From Basidiobolus meristosporus CBS 931.73 (Eukaryota > Fungi > Basidiobolomycota): a stretch of DNA of 64,000 bases. Of the stretch, positions 1-43,025 are shown piece after piece (the stretch's first letter is position 1; the number at the start of each line of letters is the position of its first letter). The notes below the pieces were generated by a model. It was not told the origin of the DNA. It saw nothing but the letters and a program-made list of their open reading frames with translations, and searched no databases. The stretch covers positions 124,001 to 188,000 of the forward strand of contig MCFE01000007.1 of NCBI GenBank assembly GCA_002104905.1, given 5' to 3'. The position numbers and the translations under genes are program-made.

Positions 1-330
1 GAGTGTAGCTCAACTGGCTGCACTTCCAACTCTTGTGAAAACAGCTGTTTTCATGTTGGTAATTTTTCTTTGCAATGATGGGATCCAGTATGATTTGGGC
101 ATGCGGTGCTAATTGGCAAGAACTGCAGTTTTTTTTGCATGGCTCCCTGTCTCAGGCTTGGGTAGACATTTTTCTCTATATCTTGTCCTTTGTCACTGCA
201 GGGTCTTTCACTGCTACTTTATCTAATTGCTTCTTGTAGTGAGCTTTGTCTTTGCATTGATAAATTCTGCTCTGAAACATCTTTTTTGGTCCACTTGTCC
301 CTGGCTGGCACTCTGCTGCCAATCTGCTGC
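1..330 (-). mobile_element. Fragment of CACTA/CMC element copy 1 (accessory-ORF region); continues beyond the left window edge
   Basis: Bases 1-330 align with ~10795-11150, inside CACTA copy 2 (gagtgtagctcaact...cttccaactcttgtgaaa). Confidence 0.8.
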
Positions 331-338
331 TGTAGTGG

Positions 339-706
339 TATTACAAGTCTTGGTATAAGAGTTGTAGAGGAATAGGGAGTTTAGCTAGTATTGTATTCAC
401 TAAAACTTGAACTGATTTTTATTGAGGTTCCAGCAGCTCCTTATATACATTTTGTCAGATCAATTGCTGACTAATTGTATTTCCTAATGTAGGTTGTGGC
501 TGATTACTCATTTGATTGCACCATCCTCACCCAATAAGATCCTACTTAATATATCTATTTCTGTCTGATAAGGATCTGCTGATTCATTTGCTGACTAATG
601 CTACTGATTTTATAGATAATACTGATATAGTGATAACCTAAACATATACTAATTGATTTGACTAAAAACTGATCTAACTTAAACATTCAAGCGGCAGATC
701 ATAACA
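339..706 (-). repeat. Gypsy 3' LTR
   Basis: Direct repeat of 4906-5272; on the minus strand it begins TGTTATGATC right after the PPT. Confidence 0.93.
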
Positions 707-716
707 TTCTCCCCTA

Positions 717-3700
717 CTAAAGTTGAGAGGGTTCTCCTGAATCTCTTTTCTTGTGATACCAATATCTTGATGGTTCAGTATTATCAGCAAGTCTTGCAAG
801 CTTGAGTCTGTCCCTATGCACTAAGTCTTCCCTGATATTGCCTTGTTTGTCCACTATTTGGTAAGTTGCAAATGGACATTCTCTGATGATCCTGAATGGT
901 CCCGTCCATTGTGGCTCAAACTTCTTCCAAGTGTTGTTTCTTAGCAATACAAAGTTCCCTACTGTCAATGCTTCTGGTGCTATAGTCTTATCAAATCTCT
1001 GCTTCATCTTTTCTGCACTTGGAGATACTTTGGCTTGTGCCTCTTGATGTCTTTGTTTGAGTTGCTGGTGTCTGCTTGGCTGACTGAGTTTATCTTCTAC
1101 GGTATCTGTAAGCTTTTATTGTGTGAGATCTCCTGGAATCCTTGGTTCACACCCATACACTAGGTAAAATGGTGATTGCTGGGTGGTGTTGTGTACTCTG
1201 ACTCTGCATGCAAAGAGTGCTTGGTCTATATACTCATCCCATCTACTGACGACTCCATTTGCATACTTGGTCAGCATTTTTCCAAATAATCCATTAAACC
1301 GCTCAGTGACTCCATTAGTTCTGGGGTGATATGCCCAGGTTTTCAAGTGTCTGATCTGCTGCATTTCCAGGTAAGTCTCTAATGTCTTTGCCATAAAGTT
1401 TGCACCTCTATTGGATAAGATCTCCAAAGGGTATACAAACTGCATCAGGATCTCATGGTAAATGAAACTTGCAACTTCTTGTTCACTGGCTATAGGTACA
1501 GCTTTAGCAACTGGCCATTTAGTGGCATGGTCAATTGCTACTAGGATCCAACAGTTGCATTTCCTGGCAGTTGGCAGTCTTCCAATAAAGTCAATTCCCC
1601 ATCTCTCAGATGGTCTTACAGGCTCCAAAGGGAAGAGTTTGGCAATTCTTTGTTGCTGGCCTTGATTGATTTGGCAGTTTGGGCATGTTTTCACTAGCTT
1701 CTCAATATCTTGTTTCATTCTGGGCCACCATGCTCTGGCTTTCACAGGCAATAGGTTCCTTCAATTCCAAGATGTCCATATCCATTGTGTAGCTTATGTA
1801 TTAAATCCAGGCAAGCAACATAAGGACAATAGGCAATAGGGCTTCCATCAACAATTTGGTAGAGTGTTTCATCCTGTACAACAAATTTGCTGGCTTCATC
1901 CTGGATTATCTTCTTGATATCTTCATCCACCTCATTAGGAATGGCTTGGTCCTCCAAGTACTTTGGTAATAGGCTAGGCCAATCTGATTCATGCACCAAG
2001 TTGAGTTGTGCAACTTGATCTAATCTTGATAAGGCATCAGCAACCATGTTGTTTTATCCAGGGCAGTAGACAATCTCCAGGTCAAATTGCTGAATGTATT
2101 CACTCCATCTTGTCATTCTTCTAGAGGGTACCTTCTGAGTAAATATATACTTGAGGGAGGCATGATCAGTCTTCACAGTGCATTTAACTCCTTCAATATA
2201 GCATCTCCATGTCTTCAAACAGTGTATTATAGCAAGCATCTCCTTCTCATGGACTGGATAGTTTTGTTCTGCTGAGTTCAGTTTCTTGGATTCAAAGGCA
2301 ACTGGGTAGTCCTTTCCCTTGTGTTCTTGGCTCAGCACTCCACCAATTGCATAATCTGAAGCATCTGTGCACAGAGTGTACTCTTTTCTGAACTCTGGTA
2401 TTCTTAAGCTTGGCAGCTTAGCAAGTTCATTCTTGAGCGTCTGGAAGGCAGTCTCACAAGCTATGTCCCACTTGTAGGCATTGTCTTTCTTGAGGATATC
2501 AGTTAAAGGGTCTGCAATACTTGCAAAAGACTTGACAAATCTCTGATAATAGGAATCCATTCCAAGGAATGATCTGAGTTCTGATATGCTATGGGGCTGC
2601 TTCAAATCTTGATTACTTCCACCTTCTTGGGGTCTAAGGTTACTCCTGTGCTAGTCACTATGTGTTGCAGATATTCTACGTGTTCCTTGAAAAATTCACA
2701 CTTGGGTAGCTTGCCATAGAGCTAGTTCTCTCTTAGCTTCTTCAAGACCTTTTCAATGTGCACCAAGGGATCCTCTTCTGTCTTGCTGTATGTCAGTATA
2801 GCATCTAGGTAGATTATGACAAACTTGTCTAAGTACTCCTGGAAGACAGTCTGCATCAGGGTCATGAAAGTTGCAGGGGCATTGGTGAGGCCAAAACTCA
2901 TGACTAAGTACTTGTAATGTCCATATCTGGTCCTGAATGCTGTCTTAGGGATGTTTCCTGGCTTCACCCTAATCTGGTTGTATCCTGACATGAGGTCAAT
3001 CTTGCTGAAAATAGTGGCTCCATTAAGTTGGTCCAAAAGCTCATCAATCCATGGTATGGGGTACTTATTCTTGACAGTAACTGAGCTCAGGGCTCTGTAG
3101 TCAATGCACATCCTAAGTGTTCCATCCTTCTTTTTCACAAAAAGCACTGGTGCTCCCCAGGGTGACTTGCTGGGCCTGATGTATCCTTGCTCCAATAGCT
3201 GATCAATTTATCTCTTCATTTCCTCCAATTCCAATGGACTCATTCTGTAAGGTGTCTTGCTCACTGGAGGGTTATCTCCTGTGTCAATGGCATGATCCAC
3301 ATCTCTGACTGGTGGTAGGCTTATAAGCTCATCTGGAAACATGTCCAAATATTTCTTCAAGAGAGTCTGGACCTGCTGGGGTGCTGGTGTAGTGGAATCC
3401 TCCTGTAATACAGCCAGGAGGAACATCTGGGTACCTTTTCTAAGTGCTCTACAGAACTGGGTCTTGCTAAGTTCACTTGTCTCACACATACCGGAATTGA
3501 CCAAGTTGAAATCCAGCCTGGCAGGTAATAGTGCATAGGTCTTGTTTTCTTTTTGGATCTGAGTAGCATGGGTTCTCCAGTTGATTGATGGATTACAACA
3601 AAATAGCCAGGTTTTCCAAGCACAAGGTCAAACTTGCAGTTCCCAAATATATAAGCCTGTAAGTCTTCTTCAGAGTCATTGATCTTCATTCTTACTGGCT

Positions 3701-4905
3701 GGGTAATACAGCTGATTATGTGAGAGTTCCCATCAGCTGTGGAGTCTGAAGTTGATTTGGTAGGTTCTGAGTTGATTCCAGCTTTCAAGGCAAATTGCTC
3801 CAACATGTACTCATGCAATGCACCTGAGTCAATCATGATCTTGGCAGGTACTCCATTGATTACTCCATTCAAGTACAATAACTTCCCTGAGTTTGAGGTC
3901 ATTTGGGGCAAGTACTCCTCTGTCATATGGAAGGTGAGTTCCGAGTCTTCTTCAAGCTCATCTTCCACATTACTGTGTTCATGGGACTCAATATGGTTGA
4001 AGGTACTTGTTGGCTGGTGTCCATTTCTTCTCTGAGGGCAGTACTTTGCAATATGTCCTTGCTGGTGGCAATTGAAGCAAAGTCCTTTCTTCTTACATTC
4101 TTCTGAGGTAGGATTCTTCTGCATAGCATCTATTTCCATTGGTACTGCTTCTGATTGTCTTCTTTCATAATGATTGTAGCCTTTCTGATTAGTCACTGTA
4201 GGCTTCCCAACTCCAAACATAGCTGAGTCATAGTCAATGGCAATCTTGATGGCTTCTTCAATAGTCTGAGGTCTTTGGTAACTCACTTCCTTGCAAGTTC
4301 TTTCTTTCAACCCATCAATAAAGTATTCAACTTGATCCAAGGGGTCCAATCTTTCAATTTGTCCAAGTATACATCTGTACTCATAGATGTATTCTTGCAC
4401 CATTCCTTTCTGTCTGAGTGTCTTTAACTTCCTTCTTAGTAGTGTCTGCTGGTGTGGAGGTTCAAAAGCATCCTGAATTTTGGACACAAACTCATCACAG
4501 GTAGAGATTGTAGAGTAGCCCATCATAGTGGCCAACCTGATCTTGCTGTGGTACCCCTGTAAAGCTGCATCTGCCAGGTAAGAAGCTGCATAATGCAACT
4601 TGCTTTCTGGAGCAATTCCTTTAGCTTTAAAAGCTTCTTCAATCTGAAAGAGCCAAGTTCCCAGGTTTTCATTGACTCTGCCATGGTACCAGTTGACCTT
4701 CACACTAAAGTTGCTGTTAACAGGGCTTTGCTGGTTCTGAGCCGTGGTAGTCATTCCTTGTTGCTGTTGGCTGAGGATCTGGAGTAACTGTCACTGTTGG
4801 GCCAGGATTTGCTGCATGGCATTCTTCCATTCTTGATTGTCCAACATCTTGAGGGTGGTTTCTTCTTTCTTCAGGAGGGAGGTTTCTGGTTATTGCTGCT
4901 ACCAA
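717..4905 (-). pseudogene. Gypsy gag-pol broken by frameshifts and stops
   Basis: Capsid-like region, CCHC knuckle CFNCHQQGHIAKYC, protease IDSGA, RT ([16 protein letters not shown] for YxDD), RNase H (TDASDYAIGGVL, HEKEMLA) and integrase (WGIDFIG, YHPRTNGVTERFN). No chromodomain is visible before the PPT. Confidence 0.93.
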
Positions 4906-33388: not shown

Positions 33389-35203
33389 CTAACTCGCTCC
33401 ACATATTAAGCTTACCAAGCCGTTTACCAAGGAGAGTCTGGACTCAAATAATGGAAGCATTCCATTCCCAAATGTATGAAGAGAGTCATGGTAATTTGGC
33501 GCCCACATGCGCTCGCTCATCGCCGCGAGTCTACCTTCCAAGCCTTTGATCTCATCTTGCACTTTGGCTTCCCAGACTACGATGCTAGCTCCATATACTT
33601 GGGGCTTTCTAGGGTTCCATGATCTGGTGCCTTTAGGGACGGTCACCCATTTGGTCTTCTTTCCTGCCACTGGGATTCCGCCAAATTCCTGACTGCCTTG
33701 CCATTTCAAGATATCCCGAACCGATGACCCATTGGCGCCAACCATGTATAGCGGTGACCAAGCTCCGTTGATTACGCTATACCCATCTCGAATCAGATGA
33801 TCAGGTCGATAATCCTGCATCGACCAAGTCATGACCACAATATCTTTAGGCGGAGTGGGGGTTGAGGTTTGCGAAAACGATTCCCACACAATGGATCTAC
33901 GGGTAGGCTGATAAAAGTTTGGGTCGATTGGACCCACACCAGGTAAAACCGGGGGCGTATACCACGAGGTGATATTCAACCCTTTGACTTTGTCGTTCAT
34001 GAGCTTCATGAAGTCCCATAGTAGTTCTTTATCCGAGGAGATGTGCTTTTTTTTAGCAATGGCGTTCTTAAATGAGGGGTCCTCGTCCGCCCTAGAAACA
34101 TCTACTTCATCAAATCCCACATGAATGTACGGGGAGTACGGGAACAATCTGGCTACATGCTGCAGCATTGGCTGTACGACGCTGTTGGTTACCGTCTCGT
34201 TGGCAAAATTCAATAAAGAGGTGATTCGTGTCTTGCCATCTGAATGAAAGGTTCCCAAGAGTTCGGGAGAGGTGCGAATTAAGGCTTCCGAATGTCCGGG
34301 AATATCTAATTCCGGCACTAGAACAACCCCACGTAAGAATGCGTATAGATTCAACTCTTTAAGTTCATTGATGGTGTATGCTCGTTTGCCGTGTTTGTTA
34401 TACTTGGGCTTTCCAATCTCCGATAGGTTGACTCCATCAACATAGTATTTGGATGTGGGTGGAGGTAACATGAAGTTTTCGTTGTCAGTCAGATGCAGAT
34501 GGAGGTAACGAAGTTTGTACAAACTACACAAATCGATGACTGATTGGAGCTGCTTGATCGGATGGTACTGTCTTGCCACATCCAGCATCAACCCTCGGTA
34601 TTCATCTGGAGTTGAGGGCCAATCCTCAAGTGCAACACTGGGCCAAACGAACTTCTTTGAGCGTTTCTCTGTTAGCTGGATCAGGGTACTGACTGCATAT
34701 GCGGCCCCTTCTGGATCCTGCGCCTCTATAACCACTTTGCGATGGGAAGCATCGATTTTAACCCTATAGCGGCCATTCATGGTGGCATTTCCGAATACAT
34801 GGAGGTTGAACTTGATTTCCACCAGACCTGCTGTTGAAGTTTTCCCCTTAGAGATACCATTCTTGACGGAGATGTTGCTCTGTTTAATTTTCAACGTAGA
34901 AGAAAGCCAGTTTTTCAGGACGAGCGCATTTCCCAGAAACCAATTTGTGTCAGAGCTGATCACTATGCCAACCTTGTCCATGGCAATAGAGGTACGGTTG
35001 TCATATTTTGATACCTTTTTCGGGGCTGGTATCACGTGAAGTTGATGGTTTGACTTCACAACAGCACTGCTGGGCACTGGAGACGATGTAGCCTCGTAAG
35101 GAGTGAACTCAGGTATGTCATTAGTGGGATGAATCTCTCGCTCCCCTAGAAAATCCCGCAAGGCCCTTTTGAAGAGTGTACCAGTTTTTTGCAGAATAGA
35201 CAT
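33389..35203 (-). CDS. Glycoside hydrolase family 20 beta-N-acetylhexosaminidase, intronless
   Basis: YRGLMLDVARQYH, LHLHLTD, VPELDIPGHS, catalytic HVGFDE and C-terminal RLAAMSERMW; a GH20b-like domain precedes the catalytic domain. Confidence 0.93.
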   Translation of the reverse strand: MSILQKTGTLFKRALRDFLGEREIHPTNDIPEFTPYEATSSPVPSSAVVKSNHQLHVIPAPKKVSKYDNRTSIAMDKVGIVISSDTNWFLGNALVLKNWLSSTLKIKQSNISVKNGISKGKTSTAGLVEIKFNLHVFGNATMNGRYRVKIDASHRKVVIEAQDPEGAAYAVSTLIQLTEKRSKKFVWPSVALEDWPSTPDEYRGLMLDVARQYHPIKQLQSVIDLCSLYKLRYLHLHLTDNENFMLPPPTSKYYVDGVNLSEIGKPKYNKHGKRAYTINELKELNLYAFLRGVVLVPELDIPGHSEALIRTSPELLGTFHSDGKTRITSLLNFANETVTNSVVQPMLQHVARLFPYSPYIHVGFDEVDVSRADEDPSFKNAIAKKKHISSDKELLWDFMKLMNDKVKGLNITSWYTPPVLPGVGPIDPNFYQPTRRSIVWESFSQTSTPTPPKDIVVMTWSMQDYRPDHLIRDGYSVINGAWSPLYMVGANGSSVRDILKWQGSQEFGGIPVAGKKTKWVTVPKGTRSWNPRKPQVYGASIVVWEAKVQDEIKGLEGRLAAMSERMWAPNYHDSLHTFGNGMLPLFESRLSLVNGLVSLICGAS

Positions 35204-36354: not shown

Positions 36355-37017
36355 TCACACTCCTTGTCGGCTTAAGGAGAACAGCTCTGATCCAAGCGCC
36401 GAGTAACAATTTGAATATACATTGGTGTACGAGTGGTGGGTAGGCTTCGGGGCTTTGGTAATGCTGCAGTAGCCTGGCTTCTGTGGACTTAGGGAAGGGA
36501 GATCCACTATGTCCAAATAAGAGATCTCATGATGGCGAATGAACTGCTCTATGTAAAGTAGCCATTGTGAATATTCCTCTTCCGGTATGTGTAAGCGATA
36601 TTTGATGGAGTGAAGAAACTCGGCCTCCATCTGATTCAACTCCGACACTGGGATTCGGGTTAACTCCGACCAGGTCTGGTTTGTGTATGTCGAATCCTCA
36701 AGCATCTTGTGGGAGATGATCAAGGAAATCACGAATAGTCGGCATTCGGACCCTTCCTCTCCACGGACATCTGGGCAGTACTTCGTCAGCCGCTGAACAT
36801 ACTTGAGACCCAGGAAAATCACTGAGGGGCTCACTTCACTGCGTATGAACACTGCTTTACAAAAATCCCGGAAGGTTATACTTGGTCCAGCCATGGTTAC
36901 TTTCTGATGCCACATCCGGTGAATCATGTGGGCTACAAAATTGGCAAGGAGCGGGATGTTGGATTTAGAGAAGTGAGGCAACAGCGGGTATTTGACCGAC
37001 AGCCATGTTTGTGGCAT
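36355..37017 (-). CDS. Pcl/Pho80-family (Pho85-type) cyclin
   Basis: Cyclin box SPSVIFLGLKYVQRL...GSECRLFVISLIISHKMLEDSTYTNQTWS...ELNQMEAEFL. Confidence 0.9.
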   Translation of the reverse strand: MPQTWLSVKYPLLPHFSKSNIPLLANFVAHMIHRMWHQKVTMAGPSITFRDFCKAVFIRSEVSPSVIFLGLKYVQRLTKYCPDVRGEEGSECRLFVISLIISHKMLEDSTYTNQTWSELTRIPVSELNQMEAEFLHSIKYRLHIPEEEYSQWLLYIEQFIRHHEISYLDIVDLPSLSPQKPGYCSITKAPKPTHHSYTNVYSNCYSALGSELFSLSRQGV

Positions 37018-38504
37018 CGTTTACGGAAGTTAGATGAAAGTAGGGTTGGTGGTTAGAGGTTTAAGTGTAGATCACCCAAGGCAACAAAGTACAGATACTG
37101 TAAGCAGGGCAGAACCTCCCTACGAAGAAGAAACAGATTCAAGTCGACCAGATTCGTAGCCTTCTGTTAGGGAACAAAGTGAGTACTGTAGAGGGATATA
37201 TCTTTGAAGCCATCCCTTCAGGGGGGTTCGCTTGGATTATATAGAATTAGCCAAAAGAGGACACCCTGAGCGCCTGAGTAGTATTTCAGATTCAGGAGAA
37301 AGCAAGACATCTACATAGAGGTGCCCTATTCATCACTAATCAAATGATGCATGAGGATCGCTTGGTGAATCTTGGTATATTGTGGTTCATTCATATAAAG
37401 CAAATACAGAATGACTCGTAAATACGGGGGAGAAAAATCGTCCATTCATTTCATTGTATTGCCGCTAGTGAGAATAAGCCATGGATCCAGATGCCTGAGC
37501 AACGGAAATGCCATTATCCTTGATCTAGGAAATGGATTAGTATCTCAGGATAATGGGGTCGCTCTTTGCAGCAGAACGAGGTTCTCTGTTGTTGCACGCC
37601 CTTATTACTTTCGCTATTCCTAAACCCTTTTCTCCTCGATTGTCGGAAATGGGTGCCTGTTTTGCAGTCGCGTTCCAGCAGATCCTGATCCGCCATGTCA
37701 TAGTATACACTTACATATGCTTACTATTAATCTCCAACAGCCTGTGCATCACGAGCCATCGTGGACGCCCGGCCTATCCTGAGAGATAGGAAGAATAATT
37801 GAATGTAAGAGTCTTGTGCACATTGCACTACGTCGTCGCTTCCGAGCCTCGCTACTCTAATATAACCATATGGATCAGTATCAGTAAGGTCTTGCTTCCC
37901 TGACTCGGATGACCCTTGTGCGTACATGGATATATTGAATGAATCTTTCGTTATTCAAACACCCAGACCGACCGACCCGAACAATTCATGGTAGGGACGA
38001 GTGAACCCTCGGCATGGGCCAAATGGCCAAGCGAGTGTTATGTAACCAATGTACTTTCATCACCAATCCCTACCGTTGCGATAGATACTATATATATGCA
38101 GATTACCCATATTTGTACCATGGTGTCGATAAAATAAGAAGCCATTATACGCACGAACCAATCACCCGCGGCGGTGAGATGTGTGTGCTCAGGCAGCTGA
38201 ATAATCGGATATAAAATATCGAAAGACTATCAACAATAACCACAATCCACAGATTTCCATTGCCAAATAAATTTTACACTTCGTGAATGTCGACGCGTTT
38301 TCCCACGATAAGCTCCCTACTGCACCATCCATTGGTACATTGATACATTTAATGGTCTATCAATGACCAAAATCAACCAATTACGTCTCAGTCGCCCGAA
38401 GGCCACCCAGGAAAACGGGATAGTCGCAAGAGCGCAGGTTTACTACCAAGCTTCCTTGCATTGACTGCTTGAGAGTGCTTTCCATCCTCCTAGGTAAAGA
38501 AAAT

Positions 38505-39677
38505 ATGACCATTAATCAACCAGAGAACTCCGTGTTTATTCAAAAAGCGCAGCCCGCTCCTGGTTCGGCGACTTCCAAGAAAGAGGTGCCTGGACTTTTC
38601 CAGCCACTACGCATTCGCTCTTTAACCTTGAAAAACAGGGTGGTCGTATCTCCAATGTGCATGTTCTCTTCCGAAGATGGTTTCATGAACGACTTCCACT
38701 TTGTTCATATAGGCCAGTTTGCCAACTATGGTGTTGGTTTAATTCTAGTGGAGGCCACTGCAGTACTGCCTAATGGACGTATCAGTCCGGTCTGCGCTGG
38801 ACTCTGGAAAGACGAGCATATGGAACAAATGAAGCGTATTGTAGACTATGTTCATAATGCAGGCTCGTTGATTGGAATTCAAATAGGCCACGCGGGCAGA
38901 AAGGCTTCAACCCCCGCACCATACACTACCGACAAAGCCGAGCGAGCAACTATTTCTCCGGAACAAGGCGGCTGGGAGGACATTTGGGGCCCGTCCCCTA
39001 TAAAGTGGAACGATGGGTGGGCCTGTCCTCATGAGATGACCGCTGAAGAGATTGACACCGTAAAGCAGGCCTTTGTCGCCTCAGCTATTCGTGCTGAGAA
39101 GATTGGATACGATGTGCTAGAAATCCATGGGGCTCACGGATACTTGATCAACCAATTTCTCTCTCCTGTCTCCAACCAACGTAATGACCAGTATGGCGGG
39201 AGTTTTGAAAATCGTATCCGACTTCCTATAGAAATTGTGAAGGCTGTTAGGGGAGTCTGGCCTAAAGAAAAGCCGCTATTCTTCAGGATATCTTCTGTGG
39301 AATGGGTCCCCGAAGGTTGGTCCATCGAAGATACTGTAGAGTTGTCAAAGCAACTGCTACAGTTTGGTGTCGACCTGTTAGATTGCTCCTCGGGTGGCAA
39401 TTCCGTCAATCAAAAAGTCCTCATTGCTCCTGGATATCAAGTTCCTTTTGCCCAACAAGTTAAGTCCCAGGTCTCTAGCCTCCTTACGGGTGCCGTTGGT
39501 TTGATCACTGATGCTCACCAGGCAAATAATATCATCGAGAGCAAGCAAGCAGATATTGTGCTTCTTGGTCGGGAGCTGCTTCATAACACCTCCTGGACAC
39601 TGAAGGCAGCCTACGACTTGGGAGTCGATGTTAGTTGGCCCACGCAATATGGTTACTGCTGTAAACGCCGCATATAG
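38505..39677 (+). CDS. NADH:flavin oxidoreductase / Old Yellow Enzyme (YqjM-like subclass)
   Basis: LKNRVVVSPMC, QIGHAGRKAS, EIHGAHGYLINQFLSP...NQRNDQYGGSFENR; the first ATG is at 38505. Confidence 0.96.
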   Translation: MTINQPENSVFIQKAQPAPGSATSKKEVPGLFQPLRIRSLTLKNRVVVSPMCMFSSEDGFMNDFHFVHIGQFANYGVGLILVEATAVLPNGRISPVCAGLWKDEHMEQMKRIVDYVHNAGSLIGIQIGHAGRKASTPAPYTTDKAERATISPEQGGWEDIWGPSPIKWNDGWACPHEMTAEEIDTVKQAFVASAIRAEKIGYDVLEIHGAHGYLINQFLSPVSNQRNDQYGGSFENRIRLPIEIVKAVRGVWPKEKPLFFRISSVEWVPEGWSIEDTVELSKQLLQFGVDLLDCSSGGNSVNQKVLIAPGYQVPFAQQVKSQVSSLLTGAVGLITDAHQANNIIESKQADIVLLGRELLHNTSWTLKAAYDLGVDVSWPTQYGYCCKRRI

Positions 39678-40875: not shown

Positions 40876-41571
40876 TTATCGGTTAATCTCTATGTGATTT
40901 GGATAGGATTTTACTAAAAACAATAGGCCATCGAGTTCGTTGGATTTCAGTGTATCCCAATAGAGATACCCATTTCCTAGTATTCGATGATGAATTGATC
41001 AGTCAGATGCGGTTGATATGTGACTGTGTCATGTCTTACCAAGCGAGTTCAATCTAGGTAATTCTTCCACATCCTCCAAGTAGAATACCCACTTATGTCC
41101 GTTTGTATTTTGGCTAATACAACGATTGCAAGGGTGGACAATGTAGTATCCCACAGTGTTACCACTACAACTTGGTTATTATATCGACCTTCAATCTCAG
41201 TCTGTTTCGGTTGACCTACCAGCAAGAACAAGCGGTACGTTGTAGTTCACAAGCACAAGAAATCCTTAAACGTTCCTGCTCGTCGATGGCAGATTTGCAG
41301 TTCATAGGTTCCCAGTCTGTAGAATAGAGATGCACACTAGGTCTAGCAACTAGCATGGCCTGAATAATACCAAAAATGAATGTTAATAAACGTTTGCTAA
41401 ATTGAAAGTACAGCTTTCTTCAGCCAGCGAGTTGATTTCAGCTTGAAAATCTCATCCGTAAATGCTGCTTCTTACTTTCATAGCTCGGTCAGTGAGTAAT
41501 GTTTGGCAATGCTTACAGCTCAAAGATAAAACCTTTCTACCAGTACTCAACGTTTGCGGTGTTTTGACCAT
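40876..41571 (-). CDS. FAM72: FAM72-family zinc-binding protein, paralog A (153 aa; exons 41476-41571, 41220-41359, 41040-41164, 40876-40976)
   Basis: Manual splice over GT-AG introns of 116, 55 and 63 nt gives ...VLSLSCKHCQTLLTDRAMKAMLVARPSVHLYSTD...CACELQRTACSCCGNTVGYYIVHPCNRCISQNTNGHKWVF...YLYWDTL...EINR*. This matches the FAM72 pattern as I recall it. Confidence 0.9.
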
Positions 41572-42331
41572 GATTCACAGTCCTAAGGGTTTGAGGTTTT
41601 AGTGGACAAAGGTACAGGAAAGTGGAATGTGGAAGGCAGGTGAGGGAAACGTGCAATGGTGTAACTGGTGATAAACAACGACTAAGAAGAAAATATATCG
41701 TGTGCTTGAATGATGCAAGTAGACCCTTGAAAAAAGGAAGCAAGTTAAATATATAGCTCTGGATTGCATACTAGTATAATATTAATGATTGGGCTTTTAT
41801 TCGAAACAGGGATGTTGGCCTCATGTGACTACCTTTTTCATATGCAACATACGATCACGATTCAGGAAATAAAAGATCTCGCAGATTCGTTCGGTCTGGC
41901 GGCAATCATTGTGGTGTTCTATGACGGAAAAATCTTACCAAGCATAGACGTAGCACATTACATAATGCAGAGTTGCTCTCGTAGTGGTGTGCTAGCATAA
42001 TAGTGGATGAGTAATAGCACGGTTTACTTGAGGTTATTTGGATGTCATCAGGCGCTTACAATCATAGATTCGAGATGAGTATGAAATACAGACTTTATAA
42101 AAGGATTTTTAGATTCCGTATCAAGAACATTAGCTTCGACCTTCATTAGGTGGAAATACTCTCTCTTACCTGTATCTTAAGAAGCTAATATTTGGGCGAT
42201 ATTTTTAGAGATATATATATAAAATTACGTATCAACAGGAGACTGATTAGTGCATGTTTCTAATATCCATGTCATTGAAGGTGTCTTGCCCTGGTGGTCA
42301 TGTATGAAATCTGAGCGCCTATCGGAGGGGA

Positions 42332-43025
42332 CTAACGATCCAATTCTACCAATTTAGTTTTTTGCTCGTCTAATTCAGGTGTTTGTATAGCTCCCCATAA
42401 TACTGGGATGGATTCTAACAGATAAGCATTAGTAGTTGTTTGAGATGACTGTTCGGGAAGATGTTAACCTGGCGAGAGGCGCTCCATGGATTTCACCGTA
42501 GCAGAATGGAAGATCCAGTAATGGCCGTTGTTATAGTCCGACAAGCAACTGGGACAGGCTGATGTTACATTGTACCCAACCACGTTGCCACTAAAGTAGT
42601 CCAATAATTAGACCAAGGCCGAATTCACAAGATGTCGACGAAATCCTAACCAATCTAGACATGCGACGTCGCGTATACTACATCCACATTTTTCTGTGAG
42701 GTATTCGGGGCCTACTCCTTGGGCTCTAATTTACAAGGTTGTAAGCTTACACCAAAGAGGTTGTGGAAGCAAACGAACCAGCTTACCTCCAAGGTATAGC
42801 ATCTGTCGAATACAACTCTACTTTACAATCGGCCAGCAATACTGCTTTCATTCCCCGTTCACAAAAGAAATTCTCACAAAACCGACATGTCAGGATAAAG
42901 ACTGGCTTGGAGTCAAACCCGGGTCTTGATTGCGTGCTTCTCAGCAAAACACTTGTACGTGAGCTGTCACGAATGTAAAAACCAGGATTCTGATGACGAT
43001 TAACACTAGTTTCAATCATTGACAT
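42332..43025 (-). CDS. FAM72: FAM72-family zinc-binding protein, paralog B (172 aa; exons 42787-43025, 42651-42725, 42469-42590, 42332-42414)
   Basis: Introns of 61, 60 and 54 nt give ...VFILTCRFCENFFCERGMKAVLLADCKVELYSTDAIPWRAQGVGPEYLTEKCGCSIRDVACLDCGNVVGYNVTSACPSCLSDYNNGHYWIFHS...VLWG...ELDR*. Confidence 0.94.

Follow-up and report, generated by a model that had tools for sequence, protein, structure and literature searches.

Why would a fungus keep two adjacent copies of a gene whose vertebrate counterpart, FAM72A, was explained only recently and has been studied only in vertebrates? The question is raised by a 64,000-nucleotide stretch of Basidiobolus meristosporus CBS 931.73 (GenBank assembly GCA_002104905.1, contig MCFE01000007.1, positions 124,001 to 188,000 of the forward strand), called here the window, in which two neighbouring minus-strand genes, paralogs A and B, belong to the FAM72 family. 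Since 2024-2026, FAM72A is described as an adaptor of the muskelin-CTLH ubiquitin ligase for the acetylated N-degron of several substrates, and not as a dedicated factor of the uracil-DNA glycosylase UNG2. The reading we favour, and hold to be fairly probable, is that A and B are a functional tandem pair that would act as adaptors of a fungal muskelin-CTLH ligase, B for the canonical degron and A with a changed preference.

Two spliced FAM72 genes

The exons of each paralog, joined from the window DNA, yield an intact reading frame, and GT..AG boundaries are found at all six introns. Both models reproduce exactly the two spliced minus-strand genes of the original prediction. Their parts are listed below in window coordinates; Greek letters stand for the intron positions that we compare between species further on. 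Residues are numbered as in human FAM72A through a 149-residue lizard orthologue, on which 28/28 landmark residues fall at the published positions.

43025-42332, minus strand: paralog B, 4 exons, 172 residues
42787..43025, minus strand: B exon 1, 239 nt; start codon, unconserved N-terminal extension of 36 residues, F8 equivalent, first CxxC, GMKAVLLAD and YSTD
42726..42786, minus strand: B intron 1, 61 nt, phase 2, position alpha
42651..42725, minus strand: B exon 2, 75 nt; CxC zinc knuckle and first Cys of the second CxxC, ending within the Cys codon before GNxVGY (phase 2)
42591..42650, minus strand: B intron 2, 60 nt, phase 2, position beta, inside the Cys codon before GNxVGY
42469..42590, minus strand: B exon 3, 122 nt; GNVVGY (Y83), third CxxC and NNGHYWIFHS
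42415..42468, minus strand: B intron 3, 54 nt, phase 1, position gamma
42332..42414, minus strand: B exon 4, 83 nt including the stop codon; VLW motif (W125 equivalent) and C-terminal ...ELDR
41571-40876, minus strand: paralog A, 4 exons, 153 residues
41476..41571, minus strand: A exon 1, 96 nt; start codon and first CxxC, ending after ...AMK (phase 0)
41360..41475, minus strand: A intron 1, 116 nt, phase 0, position delta, after GMK
41220..41359, minus strand: A exon 2, 140 nt; YSTD, CxC knuckle and start of the second CxxC, no intron after STD
41165..41219, minus strand: A intron 2, 55 nt, phase 2, position beta
41040..41164, minus strand: A exon 3, 125 nt; GNTVGY, third CxxC and NTNGHKW (N97 equivalent is Thr)
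40977..41039, minus strand: A intron 3, 63 nt, phase 1, position gamma
40876..40976, minus strand: A exon 4, 101 nt including the stop codon; YLYW motif (W125 equivalent) and C-terminal ...EINR

The Cys/His pattern that had been read as the mark of FAM72 (CxxC, CxC, CxxC, CxxC, NGHxW) is found in A as well as in B, and the family assignment is borne out by an exon-by-exon Pfam scan. Against PF14976 (FAM72, now named YPEH2ZP; gathering score 27 bits), exons 1, 2 and 3 score 54.6, 21.4 and 52.3 bits in B and 15.9, 21.0 and 37.6 bits in A, colinear on the profile in both genes; B exon 1 has an E-value of 1.8e-14, and B exon 2 aligns to profile positions 52-71. Exons 1 and 3 of B and exon 3 of A each exceed the gathering score alone, while the last exons of A and B, both short, gave no PF14976 match of their own. 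Taken exon by exon, the match is far above chance. A search of the PDB by sequence with B exons 1 and 3 returned no FAM72 chain, and an Atlas feature search with B exon 1 no usable match.

We also ran an exhaustive profile search with an alignment of the homologous third exons of A and B (E ≤ 0.001), which recovered 412 family clusters. Its top two matches are gene calls of this very locus in B. meristosporus CBS 931.73: ORY07613.1 (A) and ORY07614.1 (B), neighbouring accessions that are each named Protein FAM72 in UniProt. The genes had been thought hidden; they are in fact public as adjacent GenBank entries carrying the family name, though truncated. ORY07613.1 equals model A from Met34 on, and lacks exon 1 (41476-41571) with the first CxxC. 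ORY07614.1 equals model B from its second Met, runs into intron 3 and stops there, and so misses the last exon (42332-42414), which carries the W125-equivalent tryptophan and the C-terminal arginine. PF14976 is recorded in the precomputed annotation of both entries, as it is for the two orthologues in Basidiobolus ranarum. Both the genes and the presence of the family in early-diverging fungi are thus already publicly annotated, and the pair is sound rather than new; what is added here is a correction of both models, a description of the A-type, an account of how the introns were gained or lost, and the conserved features by which muskelin would be anchored.

The two missing exons are both present in B. 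ranarum, where an adjacent pair of identical lengths was annotated independently: KAK9701862.1 (153 residues), which includes the exon absent from ORY07613.1, and KAK9701861.1 (172 residues), which includes the one absent from ORY07614.1. Paralog A is identical to the former at 140/153 positions (about 92%) and paralog B to the latter at 153/172 (89%), with zero gaps in either alignment. Exon lengths are the same in the two species and intron lengths differ; exons are 74-84% identical without gaps (84% for B exon 1), introns 52-64% with 10-32 gap columns. This conservation across species argues for the proposed splice sites. Differences at codon positions 1/2/3 number 14/11/76 in B and 12/8/78 in A. 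Across both genes, the proportion of nonsynonymous differences (pN) is 0.04-0.06 and that of synonymous differences (pS) 0.66-0.84; by the Nei-Gojobori method the ratio of the corresponding rates (dN/dS) is about 0.04 for B, and A has a pN of 0.042 against a pS of 0.84, which is saturated. A and B are under strong purifying selection.

That one or both models are a gene-prediction artefact or a decaying pseudogene has, to our mind, next to no probability. Such a view could appeal to the lack of transcript support and to the truncation of the public B. meristosporus models. It is contradicted by the selection test and by synteny: the frames are intact and the splice sites canonical, the alignment across species is ungapped with a strong third-position bias and with insertions and deletions in the introns, and the same architecture is held by five A-type and three B-type copies of the genus.

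Predicted degron pocket and muskelin-docking residues

Human FAM72A is a Yippee/CULT beta-tent protein. Its zinc site of C18, C21, C74 and C77, with F20, A73, L75, K76 and N79, makes the contact with the discoidin domain of muskelin (MKLN1), and a second zinc knuckle, with C65 and C67, lines a tunnel for an N-acetylated Met-[Ile/Leu/Val]-Gly peptide, in which Y83 forms a hydrogen bond with the acetyl group, N97 and N98 give the pocket its order and F8 clamps Gly3; F8Y lowers binding more than 15-fold and N97A leaves it substantially impaired or abolished (bioRxiv 10.64898/2026.09.19.752822). The C-terminal arginine of FAM72A enters the Kelch channel of MKLN1 and drives affinity (PMC13676621), and W125R abolishes binding to both UNG2 and MKLN1 (PMC11364545). 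Muskelin is an opisthokont innovation found in many fungi (PMC3797097).

The eight zinc cysteines are present in A, in B and in every other Basidiobolus copy, C89 and C92 presumably completing the second zinc site. Equivalents of Y83, N98, W102 and W125 occur in both B-type and A-type copies. B, in common with the other B-type copies, retains the pocket residues F8, A32-V33-L34-L35, L42, S44, Y83, V85, L93, N97, N98 and W125, and B-type copies change F101 to Y. In A-type copies F8 is replaced by S or R, V33 by M or K, L35 by V, N97 by T (A in one copy) and F101 by K or L, the remaining pocket residues being mostly retained or conservatively changed. Within the quartet tested by isothermal titration calorimetry in the human protein (Y83, N97, N98 and F8), B keeps 4/4 and A 2/4, F8 and N97 being replaced by S and T. 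The docking loop is retained at 6/7 positions in B (F20, C21, A73, L75, C77 and N79) and at 4/7 in A. Both proteins end in arginine, as do 108/116 family members with a match extending into the C-terminal region, in agreement with the Arg/C-degron anchor described for human FAM72A.

For the B. ranarum orthologues, AlphaFold2 models reach mean predicted local distance difference test (pLDDT) scores of 80.3 and 78.9 and have confident cores, the B-type mostly above 90 per 10-residue core block. Their best matches among solved structures, in a PDB set that contains no FAM72A entry, are YPEL5 on the CTLH E3 ligase (9rsd_Y, 8qbn_Y), the Yippee domains of Mis18, and cereblon. A and B are thus predicted to have the Yippee/CULT beta-tent fold.

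Gene structure, family, predicted fold, purifying selection, synteny, shared introns and residue conservation have direct support, and the role we propose is built on them by analogy with the human protein. Both paralogs would dock onto the discoidin and Kelch domains of a fungal muskelin and there receive substrates for the CTLH/GID ubiquitin ligase. Since its pocket is retained, B probably recognises the same kind of N-terminus as human FAM72A, the N-terminally acetylated Met-[Ile/Leu/Val]-Gly degron. In A the pocket is changed at two of the four calorimetry-tested positions (F8 and N97), so that a different or weaker peptide preference is probable; a regulatory role would be the other option.

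Several points weigh against an adaptor pair of this kind. The docking loop is altered in both proteins, by F20H, L75S and K76C in A and by K76D in B, and the residues of the human dimer interface are poorly conserved in A-type and B-type alike. The pocket of A is identical to the vertebrate one at 8/17 positions and is no more diverged than the rest of the protein, so its altered specificity is read from the two key sites only. Splice junctions come from the comparison of species, a look for RNA runs covering this stretch having found none listed. In Basidiobolus the muskelin partner, and any Met-[Ile/Leu/Val]-Gly substrate, UNG or other, are presumed ones.

A ligase-independent role is also possible, given the reported binding of FAM72 proteins to RPA and chromatin: in the case of human FAM72B, RPA is bound and the protein accumulates on chromatin (PMC11377751). 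Taken further, A and B would work independently of CTLH, as Yippee/Mis18-like chromatin, centromere or RPA-associated factors, with which the fold shared with Mis18 agrees. We judge this quite improbable, since the C-terminal arginine found across the family and the docking residues of the zinc loop are explained by muskelin binding and are not required by a role on chromatin.

A narrower view would have the pair act, as in vertebrate B cells, specifically on uracil-DNA glycosylase, lowering UNG and favouring a mutagenic handling of deaminated cytosines, perhaps tied to the C-to-T decay of repeats. The degron pocket of B is nearly fully conserved with that of the UNG2-binding human protein, and W125, whose mutation abolishes UNG2 binding (PMC11364545), is retained in both A and B. 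In humans this degron is carried by other substrates of the pathway too, namely IST1, QKI, HPF1 and HEBP1; the genes adjoining the pair are ordinary ones and not transposons; and deamination of 5-methylcytosine yields T, not U. This specialised role therefore seems unlikely to us.

Family distribution, intron history and surrounding genes

Named members of the family occur in animals; in the chytrids Gonapodya (three paralogs), Spizellomyces, Synchytrium, Podochytrium and Zopfochytrium; in Neocallimastix; in the aphelid Amoeboaphelidium; in Glomeromycotina (Ambispora); in the Mucorales Mycotypha, Pilobolus, Fennellomyces, Dichotomocladium, Circinella and Zychaea; in the Mortierellomycotina Dissophora and Mortierella; and in Basidiobolus. 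Dikarya form the majority of sequenced fungi, and none is among the named matches, a sample of the 412 clusters that is not exhaustive. The idea of an ancient opisthokont gene absent from Dikarya thus agrees with its presence in animals and in many early-diverging fungal lineages; the sample supports it and is no proof. A literature search returned no paper mentioning FAM72 together with fungi. Many fungal models have long N-terminal extensions before a C-terminal FAM72 domain (Mortierella, 609 residues; Amoeboaphelidium, 403; Spizellomyces, 320; the protein P0108, 940), which may be genuine or may reflect the merging of neighbouring predictions into one model.

A word search with the full-length A orthologue returned Basidiobolus proteins only, and by this measure the A-type is a subfamily seen only in that genus. 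A maximum-likelihood tree unites the five A-type copies, with support of 100/99, on a very long branch of 3.78, and places the B-type copies as a 100/100 clade inside an unresolved polytomy with other fungal FAM72 proteins. The tree does not resolve where the long A-type branch attaches; the timing of the A/B duplication rests, for that reason, on the tandem position, the restriction to the genus and the intron pattern.

On the B. ranarum contig the order is PHO4, B, A and a HECT gene, of which the window shares PHO4, B and A. A second B. ranarum locus has B2, A2 and then a HECT gene, so that A and B are adjacent at two loci of this species. In B. meristosporus a paralogous locus (L007) consists of two PHO4 genes, an A-type copy and a HECT/TRIP12 gene, without a B copy, and the species also has a lone divergent A-type copy.

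These arrangements bear on another role for A, in which it would not read degrons at all, and would be a regulator or decoy on muskelin, or the partner of B in a two-seat muskelin dimer, without canonical substrates. A parallel is YPEL5, which blocks WDR26; human FAM72 paralogs heterodimerise (PMC11377751) and FAM72A is a dimer within the ligase; A retains the zinc sites, W125 and the C-terminal arginine while losing F8 and N97, and it lies next to B at both B. ranarum loci. We nevertheless give this role little chance: A-type copies also occur without a B neighbour (loci L007 and L008), and A still has Y83, N98 and most of the hydrophobic residues of the pocket.

Returning to the adaptor pair, its most far-reaching form is that the FAM72 receptor has split into two types that are often adjacent, B keeping the ancient degron and A taking up a new specificity or becoming the partner of B in the muskelin dimer. 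We put this forward tentatively, as something that has a modest chance of being right. If it is true, the acetylated N-degron branch of CTLH predates animals and diversified independently in a fungus.

Intron positions were compared in 14 FAM72 genes on one alignment, where public exon structures were required to translate exactly into the annotated protein and the Zychaea introns were read from tblastn and DNA. Intron beta, of phase 2 in the Cys codon before GNxVGY, is present in 14/14 genes. Intron alpha (after STD, phase 2) occurs in the three B-type copies, B. ranarum B and B2 included, in Mycotypha, Zychaea and Dissophora, and in Lingula and Callorhinchus; it is absent from A. Intron gamma (before the LxW motif, phase 1) is found in A-type and B-type copies, Lingula and Callorhinchus, and intron delta (after GMK, phase 0) in the five A-type copies, Mycotypha, Zychaea and Dissophora. 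The mapped Gonapodya prolifera gene (KXS13360.1) shares beta only, and has 3 more introns at alignment columns 96, 167 and 180.

Thus the phase-2 and phase-1 introns that had been proposed as common to the two paralogs map to beta and gamma in each, and exon 2 of A does run through STD with no intron after it, as was said. The first intron of A, once taken for a private one, is shared in column and phase with Mycotypha, Zychaea and Dissophora. All three introns of B match those of Callorhinchus (elephant shark) and Lingula (brachiopod) in column and phase, and A matches them at beta and gamma. The proposal that vertebrate introns sit where those of B do is upheld through these two proxies. Human FAM72 has four exons (PMC7957592).

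Public Mucorales models read through a GTAAG donor placed exactly at gamma (Mycotypha africana, about 1600-1640; Zychaea mexicana, 1137). Downstream of it, Zychaea has an unannotated candidate exon with 'PLLWG'; in Mycotypha only the donor was seen, and an 'IPLPWG' stretch lies in another frame. From the donor and the downstream Zychaea exon, gamma is probably present in Mucorales too. The simplest history would then be a four-intron ancestor of zygomycete lineages, with B losing delta and A losing alpha after the duplication.

The genes adjoining the pair in the window are a PHO4 transporter, an Old Yellow Enzyme, a cyclin and a GH20 hydrolase, with no transposons; three of them are placed as follows.

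38469-39677, plus strand: Old Yellow Enzyme gene
36355-37017, minus strand: cyclin gene
33389-35203: GH20 hydrolase, an intronless open reading frame of 604 residues that matches the Pfam GH20 catalytic and N-terminal domains

At three Basidiobolus loci the FAM72 gene or genes are followed by a convergent HECT (TRIP12-like) E3 ligase gene (L001, 6888-8801; L006, 3135-5165; L007, 6073-10537). A tblastx search across the window did not find this HECT/TRIP12 gene, and the Old Yellow Enzyme and cyclin genes stand there instead. The two PHO4 genes of L007 are a tandem duplication (122-4214).

Comparison with other fungi, YPEL5 and vertebrate FAM72A

Other fungal FAM72 proteins belong to the same family as A and B, and have the canonical NNGH and the C-terminal arginine where their models are complete; those compared are from Gonapodya prolifera (KXS13360.1), Spizellomyces punctatus (XP_016604270.1), Synchytrium microbalum, Zopfochytrium, Mycotypha, Pilobolus, Zychaea, Dissophora, Mortierella, Ambispora, Neocallimastix and Amoeboaphelidium. 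The A-type is a feature of Basidiobolus and was seen in none of these fungi. The practical yield is modest: two truncated GenBank entries are corrected, and to them are added the Basidiobolus-specific A-type, the complementary intron losses and the absence from sampled Dikarya.

YPEL5/Moh1 shares the beta-tent fold, is the best structural match and docks on a Gid7-type CTLH subunit. It belongs to a different Pfam family, and has no second (CxC) zinc element, the one by which acetyl-Met is bound (PMC13676621), whereas A and B have the CxC element.

Vertebrate FAM72A (Ugene/p17), the substrate adaptor of the CTLH-MKLN1 E3 ligase, is the model for the mechanism proposed here. PF14976, the eight zinc cysteines, W125 and the C-terminal arginine are common to A, B and the vertebrate protein; B alone further shares the three intron positions and phases (by proxy), Y83, N97, N98 and F8 together, and the AVLL hairpin. 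B differs by its 36-residue N-terminal extension and by K76D, C96Y, P88A and F101Y. A differs by F8S, V33M, L35V, N97T, F101K, F20H, L75S and K76C, and its gene lacks intron alpha and has the extra phase-0 intron. Early-diverging fungi that can be cultured could be used to look for ancestral FAM72 substrates. The degron pocket, zinc sites and C-terminal arginine found in fungi, together with introns shared with animals, suggest that the ancestor of opisthokonts already possessed the receptor module, long before antibodies came to be diversified.

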